DNA from: Anthoceros angustus
Taxonomy: Eukaryota; Plantae; Anthocerotophyta
Length of the DNA: 64,000 nucleotides
Reading direction: 5' to 3'
Assembly (NCBI GenBank): GCA_010909165.1
Contig: MU008164.1
Location: 992,001-1,056,000, forward strand
Numbering within the stretch: position 1 is the stretch's first letter; each line of letters opens with the position of its first letter. The translations under genes were made by a program, and so were the position numbers. This document shows positions 37 to 54,652 of the stretch, piece after piece. The notes below the pieces were generated by a model. That model made no database searches. It saw nothing but the letters and a program-made list of their open reading frames with translations, and was not told the origin of the DNA.

Positions 37-400
37 ATAGGCGCCGGTATGCCGTCGCGTATGTAATAGGAGCAAAGTACGCACAAAGGCGCCCTCATGC
101 CGGCGCCTCCGCACCCAGAGCTATGTACATAGGCACCGGCATGCCGGCGCCTCCGCACCCAGAGCTATGTACATAGGCGCCGGCATGCCGGCGCCTATGT
201 AACCATATCTATGGGCATAGGCGCCGGCATGCGGCGCCTCCGCCCGAGCTATGTACATGGCGCGGCATGCCGGCGCCTATGTAACCAGAGGTCAGAGCCG
301 TCATGCCGGCGCCTATGTAACCATATCTATGGGCATAGGCGCCGGCATGCGCGGCCAGAATCGAGCTATGGTTACATAGGCACCGGCATGCCGGCGCCTT
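37..400. repeat. Tandem array of GC-rich palindromic units (core GGCGCCGGCATGCCGGCGCC)
   Basis: About 9-10 exact or degenerate copies of the 20-bp self-complementary core, with CTATGTAACCATATCTATGG or CCGCACCCAGAGCTATGT linkers. Perfect 32-bp palindrome at 170-201. Confidence 0.9.
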
Positions 401-19487: not shown

Positions 19488-24255
<4,768 letters not shown>

Positions 24256-31796: not shown

Positions 31797-32169
31797 ACAT
31801 TGGGCGCGGGATCTTTGGGCCAGCCAAGCAAGCAAGCTAGGCGGTCGCTTCTCTCATCTGTCAGCCGGGCAGCGGCAGGGGCAGGGGCAGGCGCAGGGGC
31901 AGAGGTGAGCAGAGGCAGGGACAGCAAGCCAGCCCCTCTTGTGGTCCCTTCCTTCCCCTCGCACGCTTCAAACTCCAATTCTCCAGTCGTGAGAGAGTCG
32001 CGTATCGAGCGACTCCGCGTTTCGTCTCGCGTCTCGCGTCCCGCCTCGCCACGCCCTTGTCCCGTCTCGTCTCATCAGCGTCTCGCCTCATCGGCGTCTC
32101 GCCTCGCGTCTCGTCCCGGGAGCACCAGCGTCTCAAGCGTCTCAAGCGGCTCAGAGCGAGCGAGTGCCA

Positions 32170-33362
32170 ATGCAACGGGCGCTGCCGCCGCCGCTGCTGC
32201 TGCTGCTGGCCGCGATCCTGCTGGGGCCGGGCCCGGCAAGGAGGCGGAAGCGGCGGCGGCAGGAATCCGGGGCGGAGCTGAGGAGAAGGCCGGCCATGGC
32301 GAGGGCGCTGCGCTTCTGGGAGGGCTCCGAGGGCCGGCCTACGCACCTATGCTGCAAGCCTGCGCCGAGCAGGGCAACCAAGTGGTGATCGCGGTGCCCC
32401 GCGGGGGCATGGCGGAGCCCGCGGTCGCCATGGCCTGGCTCCGCGCCGTCACGCGCCACGGGGCGGCCATGGAGGATGCCTGGCACGGGGACGAGCTGCT
32501 CTCGGTGCTCCGCGTGCTGCGCCAGGTTGTGGCGGAGGAGGCGGCCGTGAAGCTCCCGGTGCCGCTCACAGTCGGCATCCTCAGCGTGGCCGAAACCTCC
32601 GCCGTCCGCTCCTCGGCGGTGATGCTGCGCGTGCCGCCATCGCTGCTCCTGTCCGAAGGCGGGTCGACCTTCTCCGACCTGCTGGCGATGGCGCCGGACA
32701 ATGTCGCTGTCATGTGCGCCATCAACGCTGCCCCGGGCGCCCTCACGCTGCCGGCCGAGGTCAATCATGACTCGAACTCCTTCGGCCTCCCACGCGAAGC
32801 AGCATCCTATCCCTATTCGTTACGGTTCCGTCCCGGCGGGACCGTTCCGTTCCCTCTGGTTTTGGCGGGAGATGGCGAAGCGGCAGGGGCGGCAGCGAGC
32901 GGCAGCGGGAGCCGGAAGAAGAGCAAGAGCGGGAGCAGGAGGAGGGAGCTGGCGACGCTGCGCACCTGGTGCGTCGCCAAGAGCAATGTCAACTCCCAGA
33001 GTCTGCAGGACGCGCTGAACTGGGCGTGCGGGCCGGGAGGCGCGGACTGCGCTCCTCTGCAATCAGGCCAGTCTTGCTTCTCTCCGAACACGCTGCAGGC
33101 GCACGCCTCCTACGCCTTCAACTCCTACTACCAGACGCACGGATTCGCGTCCAGCACATGCGATTTCAGCGGCACAGCAACCACAACCAACACGGATCCC
33201 AGCACGGCCGGCTGCCCCTACCCGTCCAGCGACTCCAGCGCATCGGCCAACAGTTCCAGCGGCAACGGCGCCGGTCATTCCACACGCCCCTGCTTCTCCT
33301 TCATCGCCTGGCTCTCGCTGCTCGTCTTCTCCGGCCTGCAGCTGGCCATGGCCGGCTTATGA
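32170..33362 (+). CDS. Secreted, GPI-anchored X8 (CBM43) protein with a degenerate GH17-like N-terminal region
   Basis: Signal peptide [19 protein letters not shown] starts at 32170 and needs a 1-nt correction near 32230 to join the main frame. X8 domain WCVAK...[41 protein letters not shown]...CDFSGTA. Ser-rich linker and hydrophobic C-terminus. Confidence 0.85.
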
Positions 33363-40928: not shown

Positions 40929-42935
40929 CTACAGTGGAAAAGGTCTTGCAGTGACAGATGTGGCAGCCTTGTCATCCAGATAAAGAAGCTCTATGACAAC
41001 AGCATCATCCGGAGACCCCGTGTACTTGGGTACTCTTTCCAAAAGCCCAGGTTTCAGTTTCTTCCCTTCATACAGTGCATTCGCCAACGGGAACTGAGAC
41101 CAGCACTGAATAGCAGCGGTATTTGCAGGTGAGAACCCTATGACCTGCCCATCCCTGGCAAGGACAACCTGGTACGCGAGCACATTCTCCACTGAAAATG
41201 CAGTTTCTCCAACGTTTACAGGACCAGGACCAGGGGATGAGCCAACTTCAATTCCAGCCACAGGTGCTGAATCACTAAGCACTGCAGAACCACTGGCTTC
41301 ATCTTCCGGCTTCACTTCATCAACAGTTTCAGAAGTCGATGCCATCTCTGCACTCCCCTCAGGCTCCTGTGTGGTGGCCTCTCGGGGCCTCTCCCATTTG
41401 GTGAGGTTCAACCCCATCCAAGCACCTTCTCCAGCCTTGCTCCCTATCTCCTCCGACCAGCCAATACCATCCTTCACCATGGCTACCACAACTCGACATA
41501 GCACCTCCATCTCCTTCCCAGGTAACTGGTCATTGATTGGCAGGAACGGTTTCCGATTGCTTGACGCCGTGGACAGTGGTCTGAATACACTTGTGACAGC
41601 AGCAGGTAGGGCAGAGCTGCCCTGGACCTTCCCACTCCGCAGTCTGGCTGCCACCAGGACACCAATCAGCACAGCCACTCCCACAAGCATGGCAGCCACA
41701 GACATGGTCGCAGCCAGTATTACCCGACCCCGGGACCCCAAGGGCACCAGAAGCTCTGCTTCAGAGCTCAACTTCTTGCCAGGAACAGTGAAAGGATCAT
41801 CGTAGTAGCAATCCAGAACATTCGCAAGCTCCACCATCTGAGCATGGGTAAGCAAGACTGTCCACCACCCAGGCCCTTCCTTCTTCACCCTCCCCCCTCC
41901 TTCCACCTCAACTTCTGCCCTCTCCATATTAATCTGCAGCATGTGTGCAGGCACATACTCAAGAACCCAAGCATCTCCTGGCGGCATCAACGAAGGCGGC
42001 ATCACACTGGTAAGCGGCCACCAACCATGCCCTTCTCTGCGTCTCACCCAAGACCCACGCTGCTCAGGACCCGGCAGCTCACCCCACCGCCTCCTGACTT
42101 CATCCGCCATCTCCCTGGCAGACAGCAGCCGGACTCGAACCAGGGCATTCCTGTCTGGATTCCACCTCATGCCGCCCACAAACCTCCTCAACCCTCTCCA
42201 CTCCTCCCCAGTCCACTTCTTGGTGCAGGCCAGGGCATGTGAGGCAACAGCCATGGCAATCCAATCCAGCATCTTCACATTTAAGCTCACCACCCTGGCC
42301 GCAGCCTCCCCGCCTTCCTCCTCTTCCTCCTGCACCCTCCCCATGTCCCGCACATGCCCGGGCCCCAGCACTTTCAGCTCGAACCGCATCCCCCGCCGCA
42401 TCACCACAAGCTCACACTCCCTCAACCCGCCGGCCCTGCCCTTTCTCCCATCCTCCCGCGCCCTCTCCGCCACCAGCTTCGTCGGGGCCAGAATCCTGGT
42501 GGACACAGTGCTCCGTTCCCCGACGCTCCCTCTCACCGTGATGTCCACGGTCATCAAGCTCTTCCCCCTGCCCAGCTCCTCCTCCGCCGTCCTCCCCCCA
42601 TCGGAAGCCAGCGCAGCCAGAGCTTCCCCGGCAGCAGCGTCGCCCATCAGCTCCAGACTGCACAGCTCGTTCTTGTACGACCTGACGATGGGAAACGAAT
42701 CCGAATCCTGCAGCTTCCTAGCTGCTTCCTGCTGCTGGGTTGCAGCGATGCAGAAGCCAGAGCATTTCTTCCAGACCCTCCTGCTCCACCTTGTCTCCAC
42801 TCTCTCAATCCCAGTGCCTGCAGCCCATAGCTTCCCAGCTCTCCTCTGCTGCTGCTGCTGCTGCTGCCCACCGACTCCAGGAACAACGACATAGCCACCA
42901 CTGACAGCATGCCCATAGATGCAACCTAGCCTCAT
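40929..42935 (-). CDS. ANU10: Intronless 668-aa plastid protein resembling ANGULATA10
   Basis: Motifs recalled from the Arabidopsis At1g28530 family: RSYKNEL, ALASDGG, STVSTRILAP, VLLTHAQMVELANVLD.YY.D, one TM segment, YQVVL..DG.VIGF.P, LYEGKKLKPGLLE. The symbol comes from memory, not a search. Confidence 0.65.
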   Translation of the reverse strand: MRLGCIYGHAVSGGYVVVPGVGGQQQQQQQRRAGKLWAAGTGIERVETRWSRRVWKKCSGFCIAATQQQEAARKLQDSDSFPIVRSYKNELCSLELMGDAAAGEALAALASDGGRTAEEELGRGKSLMTVDITVRGSVGERSTVSTRILAPTKLVAERAREDGRKGRAGGLRECELVVMRRGMRFELKVLGPGHVRDMGRVQEEEEEGGEAAARVVSLNVKMLDWIAMAVASHALACTKKWTGEEWRGLRRFVGGMRWNPDRNALVRVRLLSAREMADEVRRRWGELPGPEQRGSWVRRREGHGWWPLTSVMPPSLMPPGDAWVLEYVPAHMLQINMERAEVEVEGGGRVKKEGPGWWTVLLTHAQMVELANVLDCYYDDPFTVPGKKLSSEAELLVPLGSRGRVILAATMSVAAMLVGVAVLIGVLVAARLRSGKVQGSSALPAAVTSVFRPLSTASSNRKPFLPINDQLPGKEMEVLCRVVVAMVKDGIGWSEEIGSKAGEGAWMGLNLTKWERPREATTQEPEGSAEMASTSETVDEVKPEDEASGSAVLSDSAPVAGIEVGSSPGPGPVNVGETAFSVENVLAYQVVLARDGQVIGFSPANTAAIQCWSQFPLANALYEGKKLKPGLLERVPKYTGSPDDAVVIELLYLDDKAATSVTARPFPL

Positions 42936-43516: not shown

Positions 43517-44547
43517 ATGGCGGGAGCCAGTACTATGTGCAGTACCGGAGCGGTGGTTTGCAGGGCTGTGAGGCTGTGCCCATCTTCGGCAGGAATCAGC
43601 ATGAGGCTGCTCCCCGGCGTCGGCTTCAGGCTCAGGAACTCTCTCCGGCCTCGGTACCTGGTCACCACGCCTGCCCTTAGGTCGGCTGTGGTGCAGGCGC
43701 AGTATCCTGGCGATGGCGGAGGCCCCGGGGTGGACGGTTATGTGAGCCAGGCACCGCCGGCCCCTGCCTATCAGCAGCAACCGTTTCAGCAGCAACAGCA
43801 GCAGCAGCAGCAGCCGCAGCAGCAGCCTGGGAACCCCAGCGCTGGTACGTTATCGTGGGTTGTGAGGGGAATTGATGTGCTTGGTTTGCTCTTGCTGCAA
43901 CGTGTTTGTGGCCTGCAGGAGGCCAGGTAGACCCTAATGCGGAGCAGCTGTGGCGGTCGCTCTTCTCCAATCCGTCGCAGTTCTGGGATGACCGGAGCAA
44001 GAAGGTAATGCTGGATTGGTCTACCAGATGTGAAAACACCTCTGGAGTAAGTTTGTGGAGTTGTTGTTGAAGCTTTGGTTAACGATGCTTGGTGTGTGAA
44101 TGCCTGCAGAGGTTTCCCAGCGACCCGGACTTTGTGAAGAAGGGAACCAGAGACAAGCTCTGGATTGAGAGCCCCACCACGCCGCCCTGGGTGCAAGGGC
44201 AGCTATCTCAGCTGCCGGCTCCAGTTGCCAGGCCACCTCGTCAGTTTGGGAACCAGGGCGGGTATGGAAACCAGGGTCAGGGATACCAGCAAGGAGGCGG
44301 AGGTGGAGGTGGTGGGCAGTGGGCTAACAGGCAGGGAGACCCGAATGCTCCACAGGAGAATCGGCCCAGGCCAAGGTATAGGGAGACTTACAGACCTCAA
44401 CCTAAGCTCACGCCCGAGGAAGAAGCTGCGAGAGAGGAGAGGATCAGGCAGATCCTGAGCCACAATCCTCCAGAGCACCGTCGACTTTTCACCCATAAAT
44501 ATTTCCCAGATCCCTTTACTGGAGAGTATGACCCGCCAGATTCCTAG
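43517..44547 (+). CDS. Organelle-targeted protein with one PDF (OSB-type ssDNA-binding) motif; exons 43517-43844, 43919-44004, 44110-44547
   Basis: Transit-like N-terminus and polyQ. Spliced motif AEQLWRSLFSNPSQFWDDRSKK|[32 protein letters not shown] matches OSB PDF consensus W..L..NP..WWD.R..K.NP..PDFK.K....LW. Gly/Gln tail and an AAREERIRQIL motif follow. Confidence 0.8.
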
Positions 44548-45592
44548 GCTTCGATGGCAGAGCATGTCCACAGGCACGACCTTTAGGATGGTCAGAGGAA
44601 GTAAGTGTCAAGGGAACTTGATGAAGCTGGACAAGCATAGCTAATTGGTAAGTCGTGTCTCGGGAGGGGAATGTGCTGGTTACGCACCGCAATGGTGAAA
44701 GCACGTTTTAGCACCCGTCCTGTTCATATCGTTTTTTCTACGTTTTAGCAGCCGTCCTGTCCATAGCGTTTTTTCTATCTTAGCATCCTGGGTCAGCTTG
44801 TTGGTGTATCAGCAGTAGGCAGGCATTGGGTAGACTGTCCGAAGGACCTTCCTACATCTTGGGATAGGGGACACCAGGTAAAGCCACGGATGTACCAACT
44901 GATCCAGTCCACTTTCGGTTTGAAATGTGGCTTACTGATGTGATTGTGTCAGTTAAGGGCGGTCAACTGTTGTGAACCTTCAATAGGTTGAATTAACGTC
45001 AGATGGGCACATACTTTGCCATTGTTTATCCATTCCTGAGATTGGTGATGTACAGGGGAAGCTATCACAGCCTCATACAGTGTGAGATTCACCAGAATTA
45101 TAAGCGAAAGATGTCTGGTCGAAGTTGGACATGAGTGCCAAGGTTTTTCATGTATGACAATCCTCATGTTACGACACACAGCCTCCCTCGTTCTGGCGTT
45201 AGAGGTCGGGCTTCCTAGTTACCTCGAGATGGTCGTCATTGGTGGCGTCCTGCCCTAGTTCTCATTGCATTATGTGGCTATCGGAAGAGAGGCTGTTTGA
45301 AAGCTCAATGTCGATGTCTGGAGGTGTTTAAAGCTGACCTGTATTATGAATGGGAGGATGTTGGGATGACAGGATCTGCAGAACCCAACATAAATCAACA
45401 CATGCTTGTGTTGCAAGCGAAACAGCTACCTATAAGCTGTGCTTGCATCTCAAGCAAAGCCCGTGAATCTAGAAGGGAGAAGCACATCCTTCAAAAAAAC
45501 CGCAAACTTCTACTGGGCTGGTAGACTACTGTGCCATAACGATCGGCTTCACTGCGATGTTCTGTACAGGCGTGATCAAGACGTCTCCCTTC

Positions 45593-45817
45593 TCACTTGC
45601 CAGGCGGAGGAGGTGGACACACAGTCGGGTAGCAACATCCTGGATTTCCAGGGAAGCAGCAAGGTGCTCCAAATCTGCAGGCGAGAAGCCGCCGCTTGTG
45701 GTCGGAGATTCCACCTTCCGACATGCCTTCCATAGCGCCGGCAACAGCCACAAGCTGCAGGCACACAATCATGAACGTGATGAGGAAGATCCCAACAACT
45801 GCTGCGCGCTTCGCCAT
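45593..45817 (-). CDS. Secreted Cys-rich pre-pro-peptide, copy 1 (mature ACRFGAPCCFPGNPGCCYPTVCPPPPPGK)
   Basis: 74 aa: hydrophobic signal, acidic pro-segment, RRLL, 6 Cys spaced C-x5-CC-x6-CC-x4-C. ORF conserved in 4 copies. Confidence 0.8.
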   Translation of the reverse strand: MAKRAAVVGIFLITFMIVCLQLVAVAGAMEGMSEGGISDHKRRLLACRFGAPCCFPGNPGCCYPTVCPPPPPGK

Positions 45818-46950
45818 CGGATCCGGATTGGCAGTCCAAGAAGCCGGTTTGAAGGTGATCGATCTTCGATTGGCCTGTGGGGAGAGTCAAATGCCGTGCG
45901 ATCATTCATTCAGTCGTGCTACAGCTTGCAAAGATCATCATCTCACCGTTGCATCCCAGAATGACAAAACGGTAGCATTGCACTCCTAGTAGCTTGATGT
46001 CAAACAACGCAGTGCAAATCAAACAATGTGCTCGAAAATCAATATCACAGGTGACGGTGACACAACCCACTTCGTTCCAACATCTAACGCCATCGAAATC
46101 TACCATTTGCGATACCTGAGAGCTCAGGTCGTCTCTCTCCTGTGGGACGCGTCTGCTCCCGGGAGGCAGCCCTGCTGAGAAAGTCTGAGCGATATTCTCT
46201 TTTAAACGCAGTGGCACCACACGCGATTGTGCAACAGGCAGGATAAACTTGCAAGTGGCAACGGGCCCGCAGTCCGAAACAGATGCCCTTGTCCCTCCAC
46301 AATCGACCTCGATCCTCCTTGTGTGAGCTGTATTTTCTCTCGGTAATTCGTCATCCAGTTAACACAACCACTGTTTGATCCAAAATTGGATCGGGCTTGG
46401 GCTGCTTGGAGTATGTGCATAAGTGTGTCATATCAGGACGGTCCACCTTTAGTCCCTTCAGTGTGTTAATGAACGAAGATCTGGTAGAAGTCTGATGCAA
46501 ATTCCGTGCACAACGTCCTTAGAGGGTATTCATGATCCTCATGTTGCGGCACACAGCCCCTCGTCCTGCTGTTAAAGGTCAGGCTTCCTTGTCCTTTCGT
46601 GACAATCAATGGCCTCTTGCTCAAGCTTCTCTCATGTTGATTCATTTGGACAAAACGTCAGTTGGGAGACGCCATTTGAAAGCTCAATGACGTCTGAACA
46701 GCTTGAGGTGATTCTTCTGCAGGTGTTTGGAAGCTGATTTTTATTATCAATGCTTGGATGTTGGGATACATGGCAGGTCGGAACCCAATTACACAAGCCT
46801 TCTGGAAGGCTTTCTCAACGCTATAAGCGATGCGTACATCTCATGCAAAGCCCCTGCAGCTAGACGGCAAAACCGCACACGTCTACTGGGCGGGCGATTG
46901 TTGCATGGGAATCCACAATCTGTACAGGCGTGATCAAGACGTCTCCCTTC

Positions 46951-47175
46951 TCACTTGCCAGGCGGAGGAGGTGGACACACAGTCGGGAAGCAACATCCTG
47001 GATTTCCAGGAAGGCAGCAAGGTGCTCCATATCTGCAGGCGAGAAGCCGCCGTTTGTGGTCGGAGATTCCACCTTCCGACATGCCTTCCATAGCGCCGGC
47101 AACAGCCACAAGCTGCAGGCACACAATCATGAACGTGATGAGGAAGATCCCAACAACTGCTGCGCGCTTCGCCAT
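46951..47175 (-). CDS. Secreted Cys-rich pre-pro-peptide, copy 2 (mature ACRYGAPCCLPGNPGCCFPTVCPPPPPGK)
   Basis: Same architecture as copy 1. Confidence 0.8.
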   Translation of the reverse strand: MAKRAAVVGIFLITFMIVCLQLVAVAGAMEGMSEGGISDHKRRLLACRYGAPCCLPGNPGCCFPTVCPPPPPGK

Positions 47176-48306
47176 CGGATCCGGATTGGCAGTCCAAGAA
47201 GCCGGTTTGAAGGTGATCGATCTTCGATTGGCCTGTGGGGAGAGTCAAATGCCGTGCGATCATTCATTCAGTCGTGCTACAGCTTGCAAAGATCATCATC
47301 TCACCGTTGCATCCCAGAATGACAAAACGGTAGCATTGCACTCCTAGTAGCTTGATGTCAAACAACGCAGTGCAAATCAAACAATGTGCTCGAAAATCAA
47401 TATCACAGGTGACGGTGACACAACCCACTTCGTTCCAACATCTAACGCCATCGAAATCTACCATTTGCGATACCTGAGAGCTCAGGTCGTCTCTCTCCTG
47501 TGGGACGCGTCTGCTCCCGGGAGGCAGCCCTGCTGAGAAAGTCTGAGCGATATTCTCTTTTAAACGCAGTGGCACCACACGCGATTGTGCAACAGGCAGG
47601 ATAAACTTGCAAGTGGCAACGGGCCCGCAGTCCGAAACAGATGCCCTTGTCCCTCCACAATCGACCTCGATCCTCCTTGTGTGAGCTGTATTTTCTCTCG
47701 GTAATTCGTCATCCAGTTAACACAACCACTGTTTGATCCAAAATTGGATCGGGCTTGGGCTGCTTGGAGTATGTGCATAAGTGTGTCATATCAGGACGGT
47801 CCACCTTTTAGTCCCTTCAGTGTGTTAATGAACGAAGATCTGGTAGAAGTCTGATGCAAATTCCGTGCACAACGTCCTTAGAGGGTATTCATGATCCTCA
47901 TGTTGCGGCACACAGCCCCTCGTCCTGCTGTTAAAGGTCAGGCTTCCTTGTCCTTTCGTGACAATCAATGGCCTCTTGCTCAAGCTTCTCTCATGTTGAT
48001 TCATTTGGACAAACGTCAGTTGGGAGACGCCATTTGAAAGCTCAATGACGTCTGAACAGCTTGAGGTGATTCTTCTGCAGGTGTTTGGAAGCTGATTTTA
48101 TTATCAATGCTTGGATGTTGGGATACATGGCAGGTCGGAACCCAATTACACAAGCCTTCTGAAGGCTTTCTCAACGCTATAAGCGATGCGTACATCTCAT
48201 GCAAAGCCCCTGCAGCTAGACGGCAAAACCGCACACGTCTACTGGGCGGGCGATTGTTGCATGGGAATCCACAATCTGTACAGGCGTGATCAAGACGTCT
48301 CCCTTC

Positions 48307-48531
48307 TCACTTGCCAGGCGGAGGAGGTGGACACACAGTCGGGAAGCAACATCCTGGATTTCCAGGAAGGCAGCAAGGTGCTCCATATCTGCAGGCGAGA
48401 AGCCGCCGTTTGTGGTCGGAGATTCCACCTTCCGACATGCCTTCCATAGCGCCGGCAACAGCCACAAGCTGCAGGCACACAATCATGAACGTGATGAGGA
48501 AGATCCCAACAACTGCTGCGCGCTTCGCCAT
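48307..48531 (-). CDS. Secreted Cys-rich pre-pro-peptide, copy 3 (same protein as copy 2)
   Basis: Same architecture as copy 1. Confidence 0.78.
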   Translation of the reverse strand: MAKRAAVVGIFLITFMIVCLQLVAVAGAMEGMSEGGISDHKRRLLACRYGAPCCLPGNPGCCFPTVCPPPPPGK

Positions 48532-49567
48532 CGGATCCAGATTGGCAGTCCAAGAAGCCGGTTTGAAGGTGATCGATCTTCGATTGGCCTGTGGGGAGAG
48601 TCAAATGCCGTGCGATCATTCATTCAGTCGTGCTACAGCTTGCAAAGATCACCATCTCACCGTTGCATCCCAGAATGACAAAACGGTAGCATTGCACTCC
48701 TAGTAGCTTGATGTCAAACAACGCAGTGCAAATCAAACAATGTGCTCGAAAATCAATATCACAGGTGACGGTGACACAACACCCACTTCGTTCCAACATC
48801 TAACGCCATCGAAATCTACCATTTGCGATACCTGAGAGCTCGGAGTCGTCTCTCTCCTGTGGGACGCGTCTGCTCCCGGGAGGCAGCCCTGCTGAGAAAG
48901 TCTGAGCGATATTCTCTTTTAAACGCAGTGGCACCACACGCGGTTGTGCAACAGGCAGGATAAACTTGCAAGTGGCAACGGGCCCGCAGTCCCAAACAGA
49001 TGCCCATGTCCCTCCACAATCGACCTCGATCCTCCTTGTGTGAGCTGTATTTTCTCTCGGTAATTCGTCATCCAGTTAACACAACCACTGTTTGATCCAA
49101 AATTGGATCGGGCTTGGGCTGCTTGGAGTATGTGCATAAGTGTGTCATATCAGGACGGTCCACCTTTTAGTCCCTTCAGTGTGTTAATGAACGAAGATCT
49201 GGTAGAAGTCTGATGCAAATTCCGTGCACAACGTCCTTAGAGGGTATTCATGATCCTCATGTTGCGGCACACAGCCCCTCGTCCTGCTGTTAAAGGTCAG
49301 GCTTCCTTGTCCTTTCGTGACAATCAATGGCCTCTTGCTCAAGCTTCTCTCATGTTGATTCATTTGGACAAACGTCAGTTGGGAGACGCCATTTGAAAGC
49401 TCAATGACGTCTGAACAGCTTGAGGTGATTCTTCTGCAGGTGTTTGGAAGCTGATTTTTATTATCAATGCTTGGATGTTGGGATACATGGCAGGTCGGAA
49501 CCCAATTACATAAGCCTTCTGGAAGGCTTTCTCAACGCTATAAGCGATGCGTACATCTCATGCAAAG

Positions 49568-49756
49568 AAGAAGAACAAGAATTTTATTTTAGTCCACTAA
49601 GGACGCATTTCCGTCATGGGACTTGGTACTTAACAACTTGTACCATGGTGCGCCTAAGCTACTTGCACCAAGGGCATCCACTCCCTTTAGGCACCCCCAT
49701 CTAAGTACCGATCGAGGCTGAGGATGCTTAATCACGGCGTTCTTATAAATGTGTGT
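49568..49756 (-). mobile_element. 189-bp SINE-like element, copy 2, inserted in the peptide array
   Basis: Sits between GCAAAG and CCCCTGCAGC, which are contiguous in units 2 and 3 (empty site). No TSD visible. Confidence 0.85.
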
Positions 49757-49856
49757 CCCCTGCAGCTAGACGGCAAAACCGCACACGTCTACTGGGCGGG
49801 CGATTGTTGCATGGGAATCCACAATCTGTACAGGCGTGATCAAGACGTCTCCCTTC

Positions 49857-50081
49857 TCACTTGCCAGGCGGAGGAGGTGGACACACAGACGGGAAGCAAC
49901 ATCCTGGACTTCCAGGGAAGCAGCAAGTTGCTCCATATCTGCAGGCGAGAAGCCGCCGCTTGTGGTCGGAGATTCCACCTTCCGACATGCCTTCCATAGC
50001 GCCGGCAACAGCCACAAGCTGCAGGCACACAATCATGAACGTGATAAGGAAGATCCCAACAACTGCTGCGCGCTTCGCCAT
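49857..50081 (-). CDS. Secreted Cys-rich pre-pro-peptide, copy 4 (mature ACRYGATCCFPGSPGCCFPSVCPPPPPGK)
   Basis: Same architecture as copy 1. Confidence 0.8.
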   Translation of the reverse strand: MAKRAAVVGIFLITFMIVCLQLVAVAGAMEGMSEGGISDHKRRLLACRYGATCCFPGSPGCCFPSVCPPPPPGK

Positions 50082-51344
50082 CGGATCCGGATCGGCAGTC
50101 CAAGAAGCCGGTTTGAAGGTGATCGATCTTCGATTGGCCTGTGGAGAGAATCAAATGCCGTGCGATCATTCAGTCAGTCGTGCTACAGCTTGCAAAAGAT
50201 CATCATCTCACCGTTGCATCCCAGAATGAAAAAACGGTAGCATTGCACTCCTAGTAGCTTGATGTCAAACAACGCAGTGCAAATCAAACAATGTGCTCGA
50301 ACATCGATATCACAGGTGACGGTGACACGACCCACTAACAGCTAATGCCCCCGAAAGCTACCATCCGCAATACCTGAGAGCGTCGGAGTCGTCTCTCTCA
50401 GATTGAACGAGTATGCTCCCGGGGGCCAGGCCTGCTGGGAGAGATCGAGCGATGATCTGTTTCAACCGCAGTGGCTCCGCATGCGATTGTCTAACAGGCA
50501 GGATAAACTTGCAAGTTGCAACGGGCCCGCTGTCCGAAACAGATGCCGATCTCCGTCCACAATGGGACTCGATGCCCGTTGTGTGGGCTGTATTTTCTCT
50601 CGTTAACAGAAACACTGGTGGATACACAGGCTCTCACACGTTCGAGGGAGTAACACAGATGCCCAACTGTTCATGAATAGAATAAAAAACTATTAAAGAA
50701 AAAGAAAGATGCCGAACTAAATTTAGGACAGTTCGGATGGCGCTTCTCGGACATCACTAATCAAACACAACCCTTGTGCTCAAGCTCAAGTGAAGTGACA
50801 TTCATGATGAACTTGAGAAGATTTACCCACATTCCAACATACCTAGTGCCATAGAGGCCTCCGGTTTTGGACATCGTAGATTATTTTTTAGAAAATAAAT
50901 CATTCTTTTTTAATATTATATAATATTATTTATATTTATAGTATATTAAATAGGTAGTATTGTAATGTACCTACTTCTATGATTTTGTTCCGTGCCGCTC
51001 AATAACACTAGTTGCAGCAACTATAGAATTACGTCATAGGCGTACATAATGTAAAGGTCAAGCACCATCAAGAGACAAGAAAGATCCTATCCCAACATCA
51101 ACATGCTATGCAAAATAGCAACGGGGTTGCTCTCTATCATCTTTTTTAGAGAATTTGGAGACTTTATATGGATATTTCAAAGTGCACATTGAAGTCCCGC
51201 AAGTGCACATTCCTCTTTTGTTTTTGGGGTGGATGGGTTTTTCCCATCTCTTTTTTATAATAAAGTCTTCTTTCCCTCCATTGAAGTCCCGCACTAAGAG
51301 TTTACTTCAGCACTCACAACTGGCGGATTCCAACACTAACCTCT

Positions 51345-52265
51345 AAACTGGCAGACTCCAATACTAACACCTGGTGGCACCGCACATTGCAGGGACAAGG
51401 GCATGATTTAGTACTAACAACTAGCCGCCCCGCACATTGTAGAGAGGAGGGCATGATTCACATAAGGCCATGAAGTTGGGGAATGGGTGGCACCCCATCT
51501 AAGTACTGATTAACCGAACTGGCGAGGAGCACCACACACTACAAAGACGAGGGCATGATTTAGCACTAACAACTAGTGGCCTCGCACATTGTGGAGAGGA
51601 GGGCATGATTTACATAAGGCCGTGAAGCTGGGGAATGGGTGGCACCCCATCCGAGTATGATCCATCTACACATGGCCATGGAGCCGGAATGGGTGGCACC
51701 ACACACTACAAAGACGAGGCATGATTTAAAATGGGTGGCACCCCAACCAAGTATTGATCTGTCCTGTACATGGCCATGGAGCGGGGGAATGGGTGGCACC
51801 CCATAAGAGTACTAATGCATCCTAAATTTGGCCATGGAGTTAGGTAATGGATGGCACCTGGAGTTGGATAATGGGTGGCACCCCATCCGAGTACTAATCC
51901 ATTCTACACATGACCATGGAGCTGAGGAATGGGTAGCACCCCATCTGAGTACTGATCCGTCCTACACATGGTCATGGAGTTGGGTAATGGGTGGCACCCC
52001 ATCTAAGTACTGATCCATCCTACACATGGTCATGGATAATGGGTGGCACCCCAATCTGAGTACTGATCCATCCTACACATGGCCATGGAGCCGGGGAATG
52101 GGTGGCACCCCATCCGAGTACTATTCCGTCCTACACATGGCCATGGAGTTGGGTAATGGGTGGCACACCATCTGAGTATTGATCCGTCCTAACAACTGGC
52201 AACGCCACAGTGCACGCTGCAGAGGCGAGGGCATGATTTACACACCATCCGAGTATGATCCATCC
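51345..52265. repeat. Complex minisatellite: ~55-60-bp GGAATGGGTGGCACCCCATC.GAGTACTGATCC.TCCTACACATGGCCATGGA units interspersed with GAGGGCATGATTT units
   Basis: Roughly a dozen copies of the GGGTG-G-CACCC near-palindrome are directly visible. Confidence 0.9.
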
Positions 52266-53090: not shown

Positions 53091-53948
53091 TTACTGATAT
53101 ACAGGATTTGGTGCATAATGGAATGAGCACCCTATTACTGCAATTACAGTCTCTGCTGGTCTAACACAATCTCCTCTGGTTGGTATCTCAATGTAATTTC
53201 TTACCAAGTTCATCAGACAACGTTGACATGCAAAACTCTCCATCATGTCAGGTTCTCTATATGTGCATGTAGCTGCGTAATAGAGACTAGCAATATTATT
53301 ATAAGGACTAGCATTCGGCCCTGCAACTGATCCCAATCCTGATGCAGCCCAAGTTTTAGAAAAAGTTGGAGGATAACTGTCCATGGCCTTGCTGACAAGT
53401 GCCCGAATTGTTGAATCCCATGTTTGATCAAGTTGAGGGGTATAACATAGCTGCATAACATATGTACCTATTGGCGGGGAGCCCTGAGGCGGTTGTCGTG
53501 GATCTCTATCATATGGTGATCTATCATATGGAGGTCGATCATATGGGGGCCTATCATATGGGGGCCTATCATATGGCGGTCTATCATATGGCGGCCTATC
53601 ATATGGTTGTCTTCTAGTCCCTTCTGGAGGTACGTCCAAGTCTTGAGGAGGTGTACCTCTTGGTATTGGCCTTGGAGTGTTGTATGGGTCTGGAGGAGTG
53701 TTGTATGGTACCTGGAATCCTCCTGGTGGTGGAATATCATAAGGTGAGATAGGAGGCGGGTTATATGGCGTTGGTGGTGAGGTCTGGTAAGGGGAGACTG
53801 GAGGCGTATCATATGGAGACATTGGTGGCGTATCACTCGTTATTGGTATGTCAAGTGGCGGTCCCTCAGTTGCTTGAGCTTTTACTGACATAATGAAATA
53901 AGCATTTGATACCAACAAGATTGCACAAAGATACATTTTACACTCCAT
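53091..53948 (-). CDS. Secreted Pro/Tyr-rich protein with a C-terminal Gnk2/DUF26-like Cys domain
   Basis: Signal MYLCAILLVSNAYFIMSVKA, PPYD/YDRPP repeats, and C-terminal ATC-x12-CQRCL...GDC...GCSFHYAPNPVY resembling the DUF26 C..CxxC...C...C.L.Y pattern. Intronless, AT-rich context. Confidence 0.65.
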   Translation of the reverse strand: MECKMYLCAILLVSNAYFIMSVKAQATEGPPLDIPITSDTPPMSPYDTPPVSPYQTSPPTPYNPPPISPYDIPPPGGFQVPYNTPPDPYNTPRPIPRGTPPQDLDVPPEGTRRQPYDRPPYDRPPYDRPPYDRPPYDRPPYDRSPYDRDPRQPPQGSPPIGTYVMQLCYTPQLDQTWDSTIRALVSKAMDSYPPTFSKTWAASGLGSVAGPNASPYNNIASLYYAATCTYREPDMMESFACQRCLMNLVRNYIEIPTRGDCVRPAETVIAVIGCSFHYAPNPVYQ

Positions 53949-54652
53949 ACCTTCTATAAGACTTGGAAATAAAAATTCTTTGAACAAAATCAATAAAATG
54001 AAATGAGAAGCAATGAAACTACAATGTATGTCTTCCTCACAAAATAACGTGGATCAGTTTCACAAATACAATATGGGTGACACTTGCCTACAAAAAGATA
54101 CCACAAAGACTTGAAGGAATAATATTTACATGTGAATCAAGAAAAGAGCACAAAGACTTAGAGGAATAAAGACTTCGAATATTAACAAAGGTGGTTCAAC
54201 AAACTTGGACATCACTCACGCGAAAGGATATTGGACGTAAGAGGTTTTATATCAAAATAAGACAGATAAGTAAAATTATCAGAGAGGAAAACCGAACCAC
54301 CTATACAAATACAGAGTGTATTGTGCAACGGTGGTCGAAAGTAAAGGAAAGCGAAACGTTACGCAGGCAAGGTTGCCCTAAATTGGCGTGAACGCAGGGC
54401 CATATACATTTCAGTGCGTGAACCGTGCTCGTCTGCCACCTCCCTGGGATAGGGAACTTACGAAAGTCACAATCAGGAATCAGGGTGATACGAAATCGGG
54501 GACCGGAGGCTGCTGGCAGCCGAGGTGTTCAGGTATCTCATTCCACTTTTTCATTGCAGGCACCTGGATCGCCGCAATGCATACCAACTACTACTATACT
54601 AGTCTGATCTTTCAGAGATGTTTGGACTCTATCTACCAGAAGATGAATCACC

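Follow-up and report, generated by a model that had tools for sequence, protein, structure and literature searches.

The 64,000-nt stretch of the Anthoceros angustus genome analysed here (contig MU008164.1 of assembly GCA_010909165.1, positions 992,001 to 1,056,000; hereafter the window) carries on its minus strand four tandem copies of a 74-codon open reading frame (ORF). We consider it fairly probable, at about 0.6, that these copies are genuine small genes, forming a tandem family restricted to this lineage and encoding secreted cysteine-rich prepropeptides, most likely with a role in defence or in the interaction with microbes, the latter role being the weakest step of this explanation. 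The length of the ORF is not beyond chance, since each repeat unit has several ORFs of at least 100 aa in other frames. What goes beyond chance is the combination of three things: the architecture of the precursor, a coding sequence (CDS) that has diverged less than its flanks in the oldest copy, and an assembled contig from a public sequencing run that matches copy 1.

Precursor architecture and coding status

Each copy has the layout given in the first-pass annotation, with a hydrophobic N-terminus, an RRLL motif ahead of the first cysteine, a six-cysteine domain and a proline tail. As also described there, residues 1-45 are identical in all four copies, with the qualification that the underlying DNA has two synonymous third-position differences (nt 36 and nt 123). 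Secreted cysteine-rich peptides (CRPs) of plants are recognised by a small precursor whose C-terminal domain conserves four or more cysteines, even in number; the 74-aa precursors here, with six, have this form. The signal-peptide-like N-terminus consists of an n-region of charge +2 and 21-22 uncharged hydrophobic residues (mean Kyte-Doolittle hydropathy about 2.2-3.0), with A-G-A at residues 26-28 (-3/-1). In an AlphaFold2 model computed from a three-sequence alignment, residues 2-30 form a confident helix; the mean predicted local distance difference test score (pLDDT) is 65 over the whole model and about 55 in the mature domain, which is too low for inferring disulfides.

The pro-segment of 17 residues had been called acidic, which does not hold, as its net charge is 0 once KRR is counted. 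It ends in RRLL (residues 42-45), directly before A46-C47, in the context HKRRLL|ACRF. Plant S1P/SBT6.1 and SBT3.5 cut at an RxxL/RxLx motif, and in RALF23 the cut is INRRIL|ATRRY (PMC13082318). RRLL|A closely matches both the RxxL/RxLx rule and the proven S1P cut RRIL|A of RALF23, in favour of the original assignment of RRLL as an S1P/SBT6.1-type site. The mature part of 29 aa has six invariant cysteines (residues 47-67) arranged as C-x5-CC-x6-CC-x4-C, with three inter-cysteine loops of 5, 6 and 4 residues, followed by PPPPPGK; it includes nine prolines and four glycines and an internal near-repeat, CC-(F/L/Y)-P, that occurs twice.

From this layout, maturation can be pictured as follows. The 74-aa precursor would enter the endoplasmic reticulum via its N-terminal hydrophobic segment and be cut by signal peptidase after A-G-A28; three disulfides would form in the six-cysteine domain; and a Golgi S1P/SBT6.1-type subtilase would cut after RRLL45, yielding a 29-aa peptide rich in proline, glycine and cysteine with a net charge of +2. 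Contiguous prolines are a plausible site of hydroxylation and arabinosylation under the Hyp-contiguity rule, and the PPPPPGK tail may be modified in this way, possibly with trimming of the terminal lysine. C-terminal amidation via -Pro-Gly-Lys was considered and is unlikely, because land plants are reported to lack the amidating enzyme PAM (PMC6529398, which does not name hornworts).

Should the hydrophobic stretch serve as a signal anchor instead, the cut at RRLL, 17 residues beyond A-G-A, would free the cysteine domain anyway. This bears on the reading of the product as a membrane-anchored or wall-bound mini-protein of structural or adhesive function, with a type II signal anchor and an extensin-like proline tail, which we regard as very improbable. 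Although the uncharged stretch exceeds a typical signal-peptide h-region and the tail consists of five contiguous prolines, A-G-A at -3/-1 is a good signal-peptidase site, and the tail contains no tyrosine or lysine-rich extensin cross-linking motif.

Copy 1 is transcribed, unspliced from codon 13 into the 3' untranslated region (UTR), as seen in one run and in contigs only. A 457-nt contig in the public run X1 (about 29 Mb of contigs, of the kind 'RNA?') is identical to 45325-45781, with 0 mismatches and no joint, and carries the bases specific to copy 1. Of the words sampled from 45450-46450, about 0.30 are present in X1; these come from the genic third, with the intergenic two thirds unrepresented, which is why we argue that the run is RNA, not DNA. 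Two objections that had been foreseen for the secreted-peptide reading, the absence of transcripts and splicing at GGCAA|GTGAG that extends the ORF into another domain, accordingly lose their force: a transcript-like contig matches copy 1, running collinearly past the stop codon and through GGCAA|GTGAG, where no splicing is seen. At its other end, the contig stops one base short of 45782, a site at which copy 4 differs, consistent with an assembly break between co-expressed paralogues. In the 3' UTR, an ATAATA-like element lies about 15-20 nt short of where the contig stops and may mark a poly(A) site.

The same contig speaks to the idea, which we find hardly credible, that the 74 codons belong to a larger, multi-exon gene and are spliced to a coding exon upstream via CCACAG|G at 45875/45874 or to an exon downstream after GGCAA|GTGAG. 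It is true that the frame is open for 23 codons upstream of the ATG, that a good phase-0 acceptor lies at 45875/45874, and that the X1 contig does not reach the transcript's 5' end. However, collinearity extends through the stop and 268 nt beyond, with no downstream splice seen; the sole candidate upstream donor (45947/45946) would join an out-of-frame ATG; and Met-Ala followed by a canonical n/h/c region argues for a true N-terminus. The conserved stretch upstream of the ATG (Table 1) is presumed to be promoter and 5' leader. It contains a candidate 72-nt leader intron at 45946-45875 (GTGAGA...TTGACTCTCCCCACAG, acceptor CCACAG), the splice signals of which are kept in all four copies; this intron, if used, would remove upstream ATGs at 45909 and 45905.

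Comparison of copy 4 with copy 2 shows where the repeat has been conserved. The CDS differs at 7/222 positions (3.2%), compared to 55/520 (10.6%) upstream and 23/136 (17%) downstream (Fisher P 4e-4 and 1e-5, respectively), and there are no indels in any CDS, whereas the flanks have many. We take the frame to be right because both changes in codons 1-45 are third-position changes that are synonymous in it. In another frame, a 109-aa ORF (45576-45905, minus strand) overlaps the peptide CDS; it is intact in all four copies and has no recognisable features. This ORF and the plus-strand 130-aa ORFs of the repeat were rejected as the coding frame. In the 109-aa frame, copy 2 departs from copy 4 at nine residues, most nucleotide differences being nonsynonymous there, the 130-aa ORFs are altered in length and C-terminus in copy 4, and neither the former nor the latter have a Pfam match.

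It also seemed conceivable that the peptide ORF is young or function-less, residing on a recently amplified transcribed segment, and that no lasting, functional product is made from it. At 0-0.9% divergence, copies 1-3 are too young for their intact frames to count as evidence, the repeat unit has other long ORFs, including the 109-aa ORF on the same strand in all four copies, and the gene is an orphan whose mature part shows a ratio of nonsynonymous to synonymous changes (pN/pS) of about 1. We nevertheless judge this possibility improbable. In copy 4 the flanks have diverged three to five times more than the CDS, which has no indel, while the competing frames have changed in the manner just described; zero nonsynonymous changes fall in 101 pre-pro sites, and the cysteines, prolines and glycines are invariant (for residue 52, see below); and a full signal, pro-segment, RRLL and six-cysteine architecture would be unlikely to arise by chance.

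Relatives and known peptide families

The peptides had been proposed to form an undescribed family outside the known CRP classes and, within reach of the tools used here, the family does appear to be undescribed. Pfam gave no family at E<=10 for three of the copies, PDB sequences gave no match at E<=10, a word-index search of 5.8 billion clusters gave nothing at E<=1, and exact-sequence look-ups of all three distinct proteins found no record. An exhaustive HMMER search of 1.84 billion representatives returned three matches, which were discarded as artefacts: these are proteins of 439-3139 aa with 6-52 tandem repeats without CC doublets, and weak matches of such tandem repeats sum up. In the ESM Atlas, the whole protein reached a best score of 0.86 to a 72-aa Streptophyta cluster, which is a lead only, while the mature part gave no usable match.

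At the DNA level, back-translated scans of metagenome and bacterial/archaeal contigs yielded no confirmed relative. The pattern C-x5-CC-x6-CC-x4-C-PPP, searched in metagenomes, had at least 120 matches; those translated are poly-Cys runs of the (TGC)n type or due to chance, none has a signal or RRLL, and the search is uninformative. In the literature, 'C-CC-CC-C' led only to conotoxin framework XI (C-C-CC-CC-C-C), which is the nearest conotoxin framework and has eight cysteines compared to six here, and to no plant peptide. The six-cysteine frameworks surveyed in plants are C-C-CC-C-C, C-C-C-C-C-C, the thionin type, the jasmintide type and the C-CC-C-CC of beta-ginkgotides, with C-CC-CC-C being absent (PMC5522442).

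In its presumed processing, the peptide is closest to the RALF type. In RALF precursors, exemplified by Arabidopsis RALF23, the pro-segment is removed at an RR[IL]L|A S1P/SBT6.1-type site ahead of a disulfide-bonded mature peptide (PMC13082318), and the hornwort precursors likewise have an RRxL S1P site, RRLL 42-45, directly upstream of the mature peptide. The resemblance ends there: the RALF profile (PF05498) gives no match, the YISY motif is missing, the six cysteines with two doublets contrast with four in RALF, the mature peptide has 29 residues instead of about 50, and RALFs occur across land plants, whereas the family described here is an orphan. The Pfam profiles for defensin/gamma-thionin, thionin, snakin/GASA, hevein, LTP, EPF and the other plant CRPs modelled in Pfam do not match either, and the C-CC-CC-C arrangement differs from the knottin or six-cysteine hevein-like spacings C-C-CC-C-C and C-C-C-C-C-C (PMC5522442).

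In its doublets and loops, by contrast, the peptide recalls the beta-ginkgotides of gymnosperms, with which it shares two CC doublets, three loops, a dense cystine core and a multi-domain precursor (PMC5522442). The beta-ginkgotides, connected CysI-IV, II-VI and III-V, have C-CC-C-CC in a core of 16 residues, compared to C-CC-CC-C in 21 here, such that the second doublet is CysIV-V rather than V-VI; at 29% cysteine, the core of the hornwort peptide falls just under the 30% 'hyperdisulfide' line drawn in the same study (PMC5522442). There is no sequence similarity between the two, and beta-ginkgotides belong to another plant lineage. The peptide thus resembles the RALF type in processing and the beta-ginkgotides in doublets and loops, but is a member of neither. 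A third likeness concerns gene organisation: the defensin-like/NCR peptides of plants and the conotoxin precursors of animals also occur as tandem copies in which signal and pro region are invariant and change is concentrated between conserved cysteines. Homology to these is absent, however, and the divergence here is tiny, comprising six conservative replacements at a pN/pS of about 1.

Variation among the copies and probable role

All six amino-acid replacements (F/Y49, P/T52, F/L55, N/S58, Y/F63 and T/S65) lie between C47 and C67, in agreement with what was noticed at first reading. All six are conservative, and all six cysteines, all glycines and, P/T52 apart, all prolines are invariant among the copies. 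The alignment of copies 1 and 2 over 1,243 nt has five substitutions, every one of them within 66 nt of CDS (45630-45695; Monte Carlo P=2e-5). With copy 4 used to set the direction of change, Y49F and F63Y arose in copy 1, while F55L, which takes two nucleotides, and one synonymous change arose in copies 2 and 3. Over the whole family, 6 nonsynonymous events fall on 65 mature sites, as against 0 on 101 pre-pro sites (P=0.003). The swap of aromatic residues in 45630-45695 is reciprocal: copy 1 has F49 and Y63, copies 2-4 have Y49 and F63, and each peptide has one tyrosine and one phenylalanine at these positions. Residues 49 and 63 may be in contact, or there may be a requirement for a single tyrosine.

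Judged by these comparisons, the scaffold and the pre-pro region are clearly constrained, and the concentration of recent change in the mature loops is real; positive selection, on the other hand, is suggested, not demonstrated. The mature-part pN/pS is 0.046/0.046 to 0.061/0.046, a McDonald-Kreitman-style table gives P=0.08, and the mature codons are 5.7% diverged relative to copy 4, which is below the flanks (P=0.014 downstream, P=0.24 upstream). The pattern would look the same if unseen paralogues had donated short tracts by gene conversion, or if homogenisation had bypassed this patch. Of the diversifying selection originally proposed, what stands is the significant clustering in mature codons; selection as its cause does not follow, given a pN/pS of about 1, six conservative replacements and gene conversion that is equally able to produce it.

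The conservative nature of the changes, the invariant scaffold and a pN/pS not above 1 would also suit an endogenous RALF-like or EPF-like hormone that is processed in the same way and acts as a ligand of a receptor kinase. Such a hormone would share the S1P-type site of RALF23, and it would be small, low in net charge and possibly equipped with a Hyp-arabinosylated proline tail, as are several plant peptide hormones. We regard this as unlikely, though worth serious attention. No relative was found in other organisms, while the peptide hormones known from plants tend to be shared widely among land plants (PMC8462819), and a very recent amplification with changes in the mature domain only would be unusual for ligands that have to fit a receptor. 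A role in defence or microbe interaction is preferred over a conserved hormone because the changes fall in mature codons, the genes are tandemly amplified and the pre-pro region is invariant. The more specific roles put forward at first reading, antimicrobial, symbiont-related or gamete-related, are hypothetical.

Several points weigh against a family of secreted defence peptides. Secretion, cleavage and disulfides are predictions from sequence, and the hydrophobic stretch, at 21-22 residues, is long enough for a signal anchor. The transcript is represented by one assembled contig, in one run that is presumed to be RNA; this contig lacks the first 36 nt of the CDS, so the start codon, the 5' end and the strand are presumptive. 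The absence of relatives is weak evidence, as plant ORFs of 74 codons are often unannotated and the family's own proteins are missing from the collections. With a pN/pS near 1, relaxed constraint or conversion from unseen paralogues fits the clustering equally well, and a net charge of +2 is less than one would expect of a classic cationic antimicrobial peptide.

Much of plant defence, symbiosis and cell-to-cell signalling relies on secreted CRPs; plants have hundreds of lineage-specific defence-peptide families, and nearly all CRP families described so far come from seed plants. To our knowledge, no peptide-mediated interaction has been characterised in this bryophyte-grade lineage. If the secreted-peptide reading is true, the family would add a new six-cysteine scaffold to the short list of three-loop plant mini-proteins and offer a handle on peptide interactions of hornwort grade, with a peptide that is small enough for direct synthesis and testing; as a lineage-specific defence peptide it would be useful and unsurprising. 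NCR peptides act on rhizobia, and one may speculate about a hornwort-specific family with a new C-CC-CC-C framework, diversifying paralogues and four-cysteine relatives in the genome that acts on microbial partners or enemies, such as cyanobacterial symbionts; this wider picture is doubtful.

Array layout and other features of the window

The ORF copies are embedded in direct repeats that form a tandem array of roughly 1.36 kb per unit, the spacings being 1358, 1356 and 1550 nt (Table 1). The description as a four-copy family is right in that four intact ORFs are present, although these encode three distinct peptides, copies 2 and 3 being identical. A tblastn search of the window found no further copy of the peptide ORF, intact or decayed. 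The array appears to have grown by one older duplication, which gave copy 4, and then by the very recent ones that gave copies 1-3. The stretch between units 3 and 4 is either an insertion or the trace of a deletion in the ancestor of units 1-3.

Table 1. Features of the peptide array (positions are those of the window; residues are those of the precursor)
Feature	Position	Strand	Basis	Remarks
Copy 1 CDS	45593..45817	-	ORF list	74 codons + stop; F49, F55, Y63
Copy 2 CDS	46951..47175	-	ORF list	74 codons; Y49, L55, F63
Copy 3 CDS	48307..48531	-	ORF list	identical to copy 2 in coding sequence
Copy 4 CDS	49857..50081	-		oldest copy; T52, S58, S65 and one synonymous change at nt 36
Copy 1 precursor parts	residues 1-28, 29-45, 46-74			signal-like; pro-segment ending RRLL; mature domain
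Presumed promoter and 5' leader, copy 1	45818..46067	-	alignment, variability profile	about 250 nt preceding the ATG; 97% conservation among the four copies
Leader equivalent, copy 2	47176-47425	-
Leader equivalent, copy 3	48532-48790	-
Leader equivalent, copy 4	50082-50335	-
Copy 1 3' UTR	45325..45592	-	X1 contig	about 268 nt, as far as the contig extends
Repeat unit 1	45561..46803	-	blastn	99.4% identity to unit 2
Repeat unit 2	46800..48160	-	blastn of one unit vs window	reference unit, 1361 nt
Repeat unit 3	48157..49520	-	blastn	99.1% identity to unit 2
Repeat unit 4	49757..50606	-	blastn	partial, older; 91.5% identity to unit 2
Stretch between units 3 and 4	49568-49756			about 190 nt, no counterpart in any unit
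Degenerate remnant of an older unit	45160..45367	-		downstream of copy 1; matches the distal part of the unit in patches, at 80-83% identity

Beyond unit 4, an AT-rich spacer at 51377-51998 holds two families of 129-nt direct repeats, which are 81-88% identical and spaced 140-152 nt apart. Near the array lies a 300-aa ORF (53091-53993, minus strand) with a hydrophobic N-terminal stretch, a proline-rich region with about seven PYDRP repeats and a cysteine-containing C-terminal domain; it has no Pfam family and may encode a secreted proline-rich protein. On the other side of the array, TGC/GCA-type microsatellites at about 42830-42882 and at 43804-43836 provide poly-Cys or poly-Ala/Gln frames within longer ORFs, and these Cys-codon repeats are the source of the spurious cysteine-rich tblastn matches.

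Rfam found nothing in the window, and a scan for bacterial-type promoters and terminators was set aside as irrelevant for a plant. The X8 and DYW-deaminase domains carried by other ORFs of the window mark it as land-plant DNA. A stretch of about 62% GC carries a 520-aa ORF (31800-33362, plus strand) with a strong X8 domain (E=6e-24). Further upstream, two similar ORFs lie about 1.54 kb apart on the plus strand (20615-21157 and 22154-23014), the second of which matches a class I Met-tRNA synthetase fragment (E=2e-20); the same short peptide match recurs at 21084 and at 22623, as if part of a gene had been duplicated locally.

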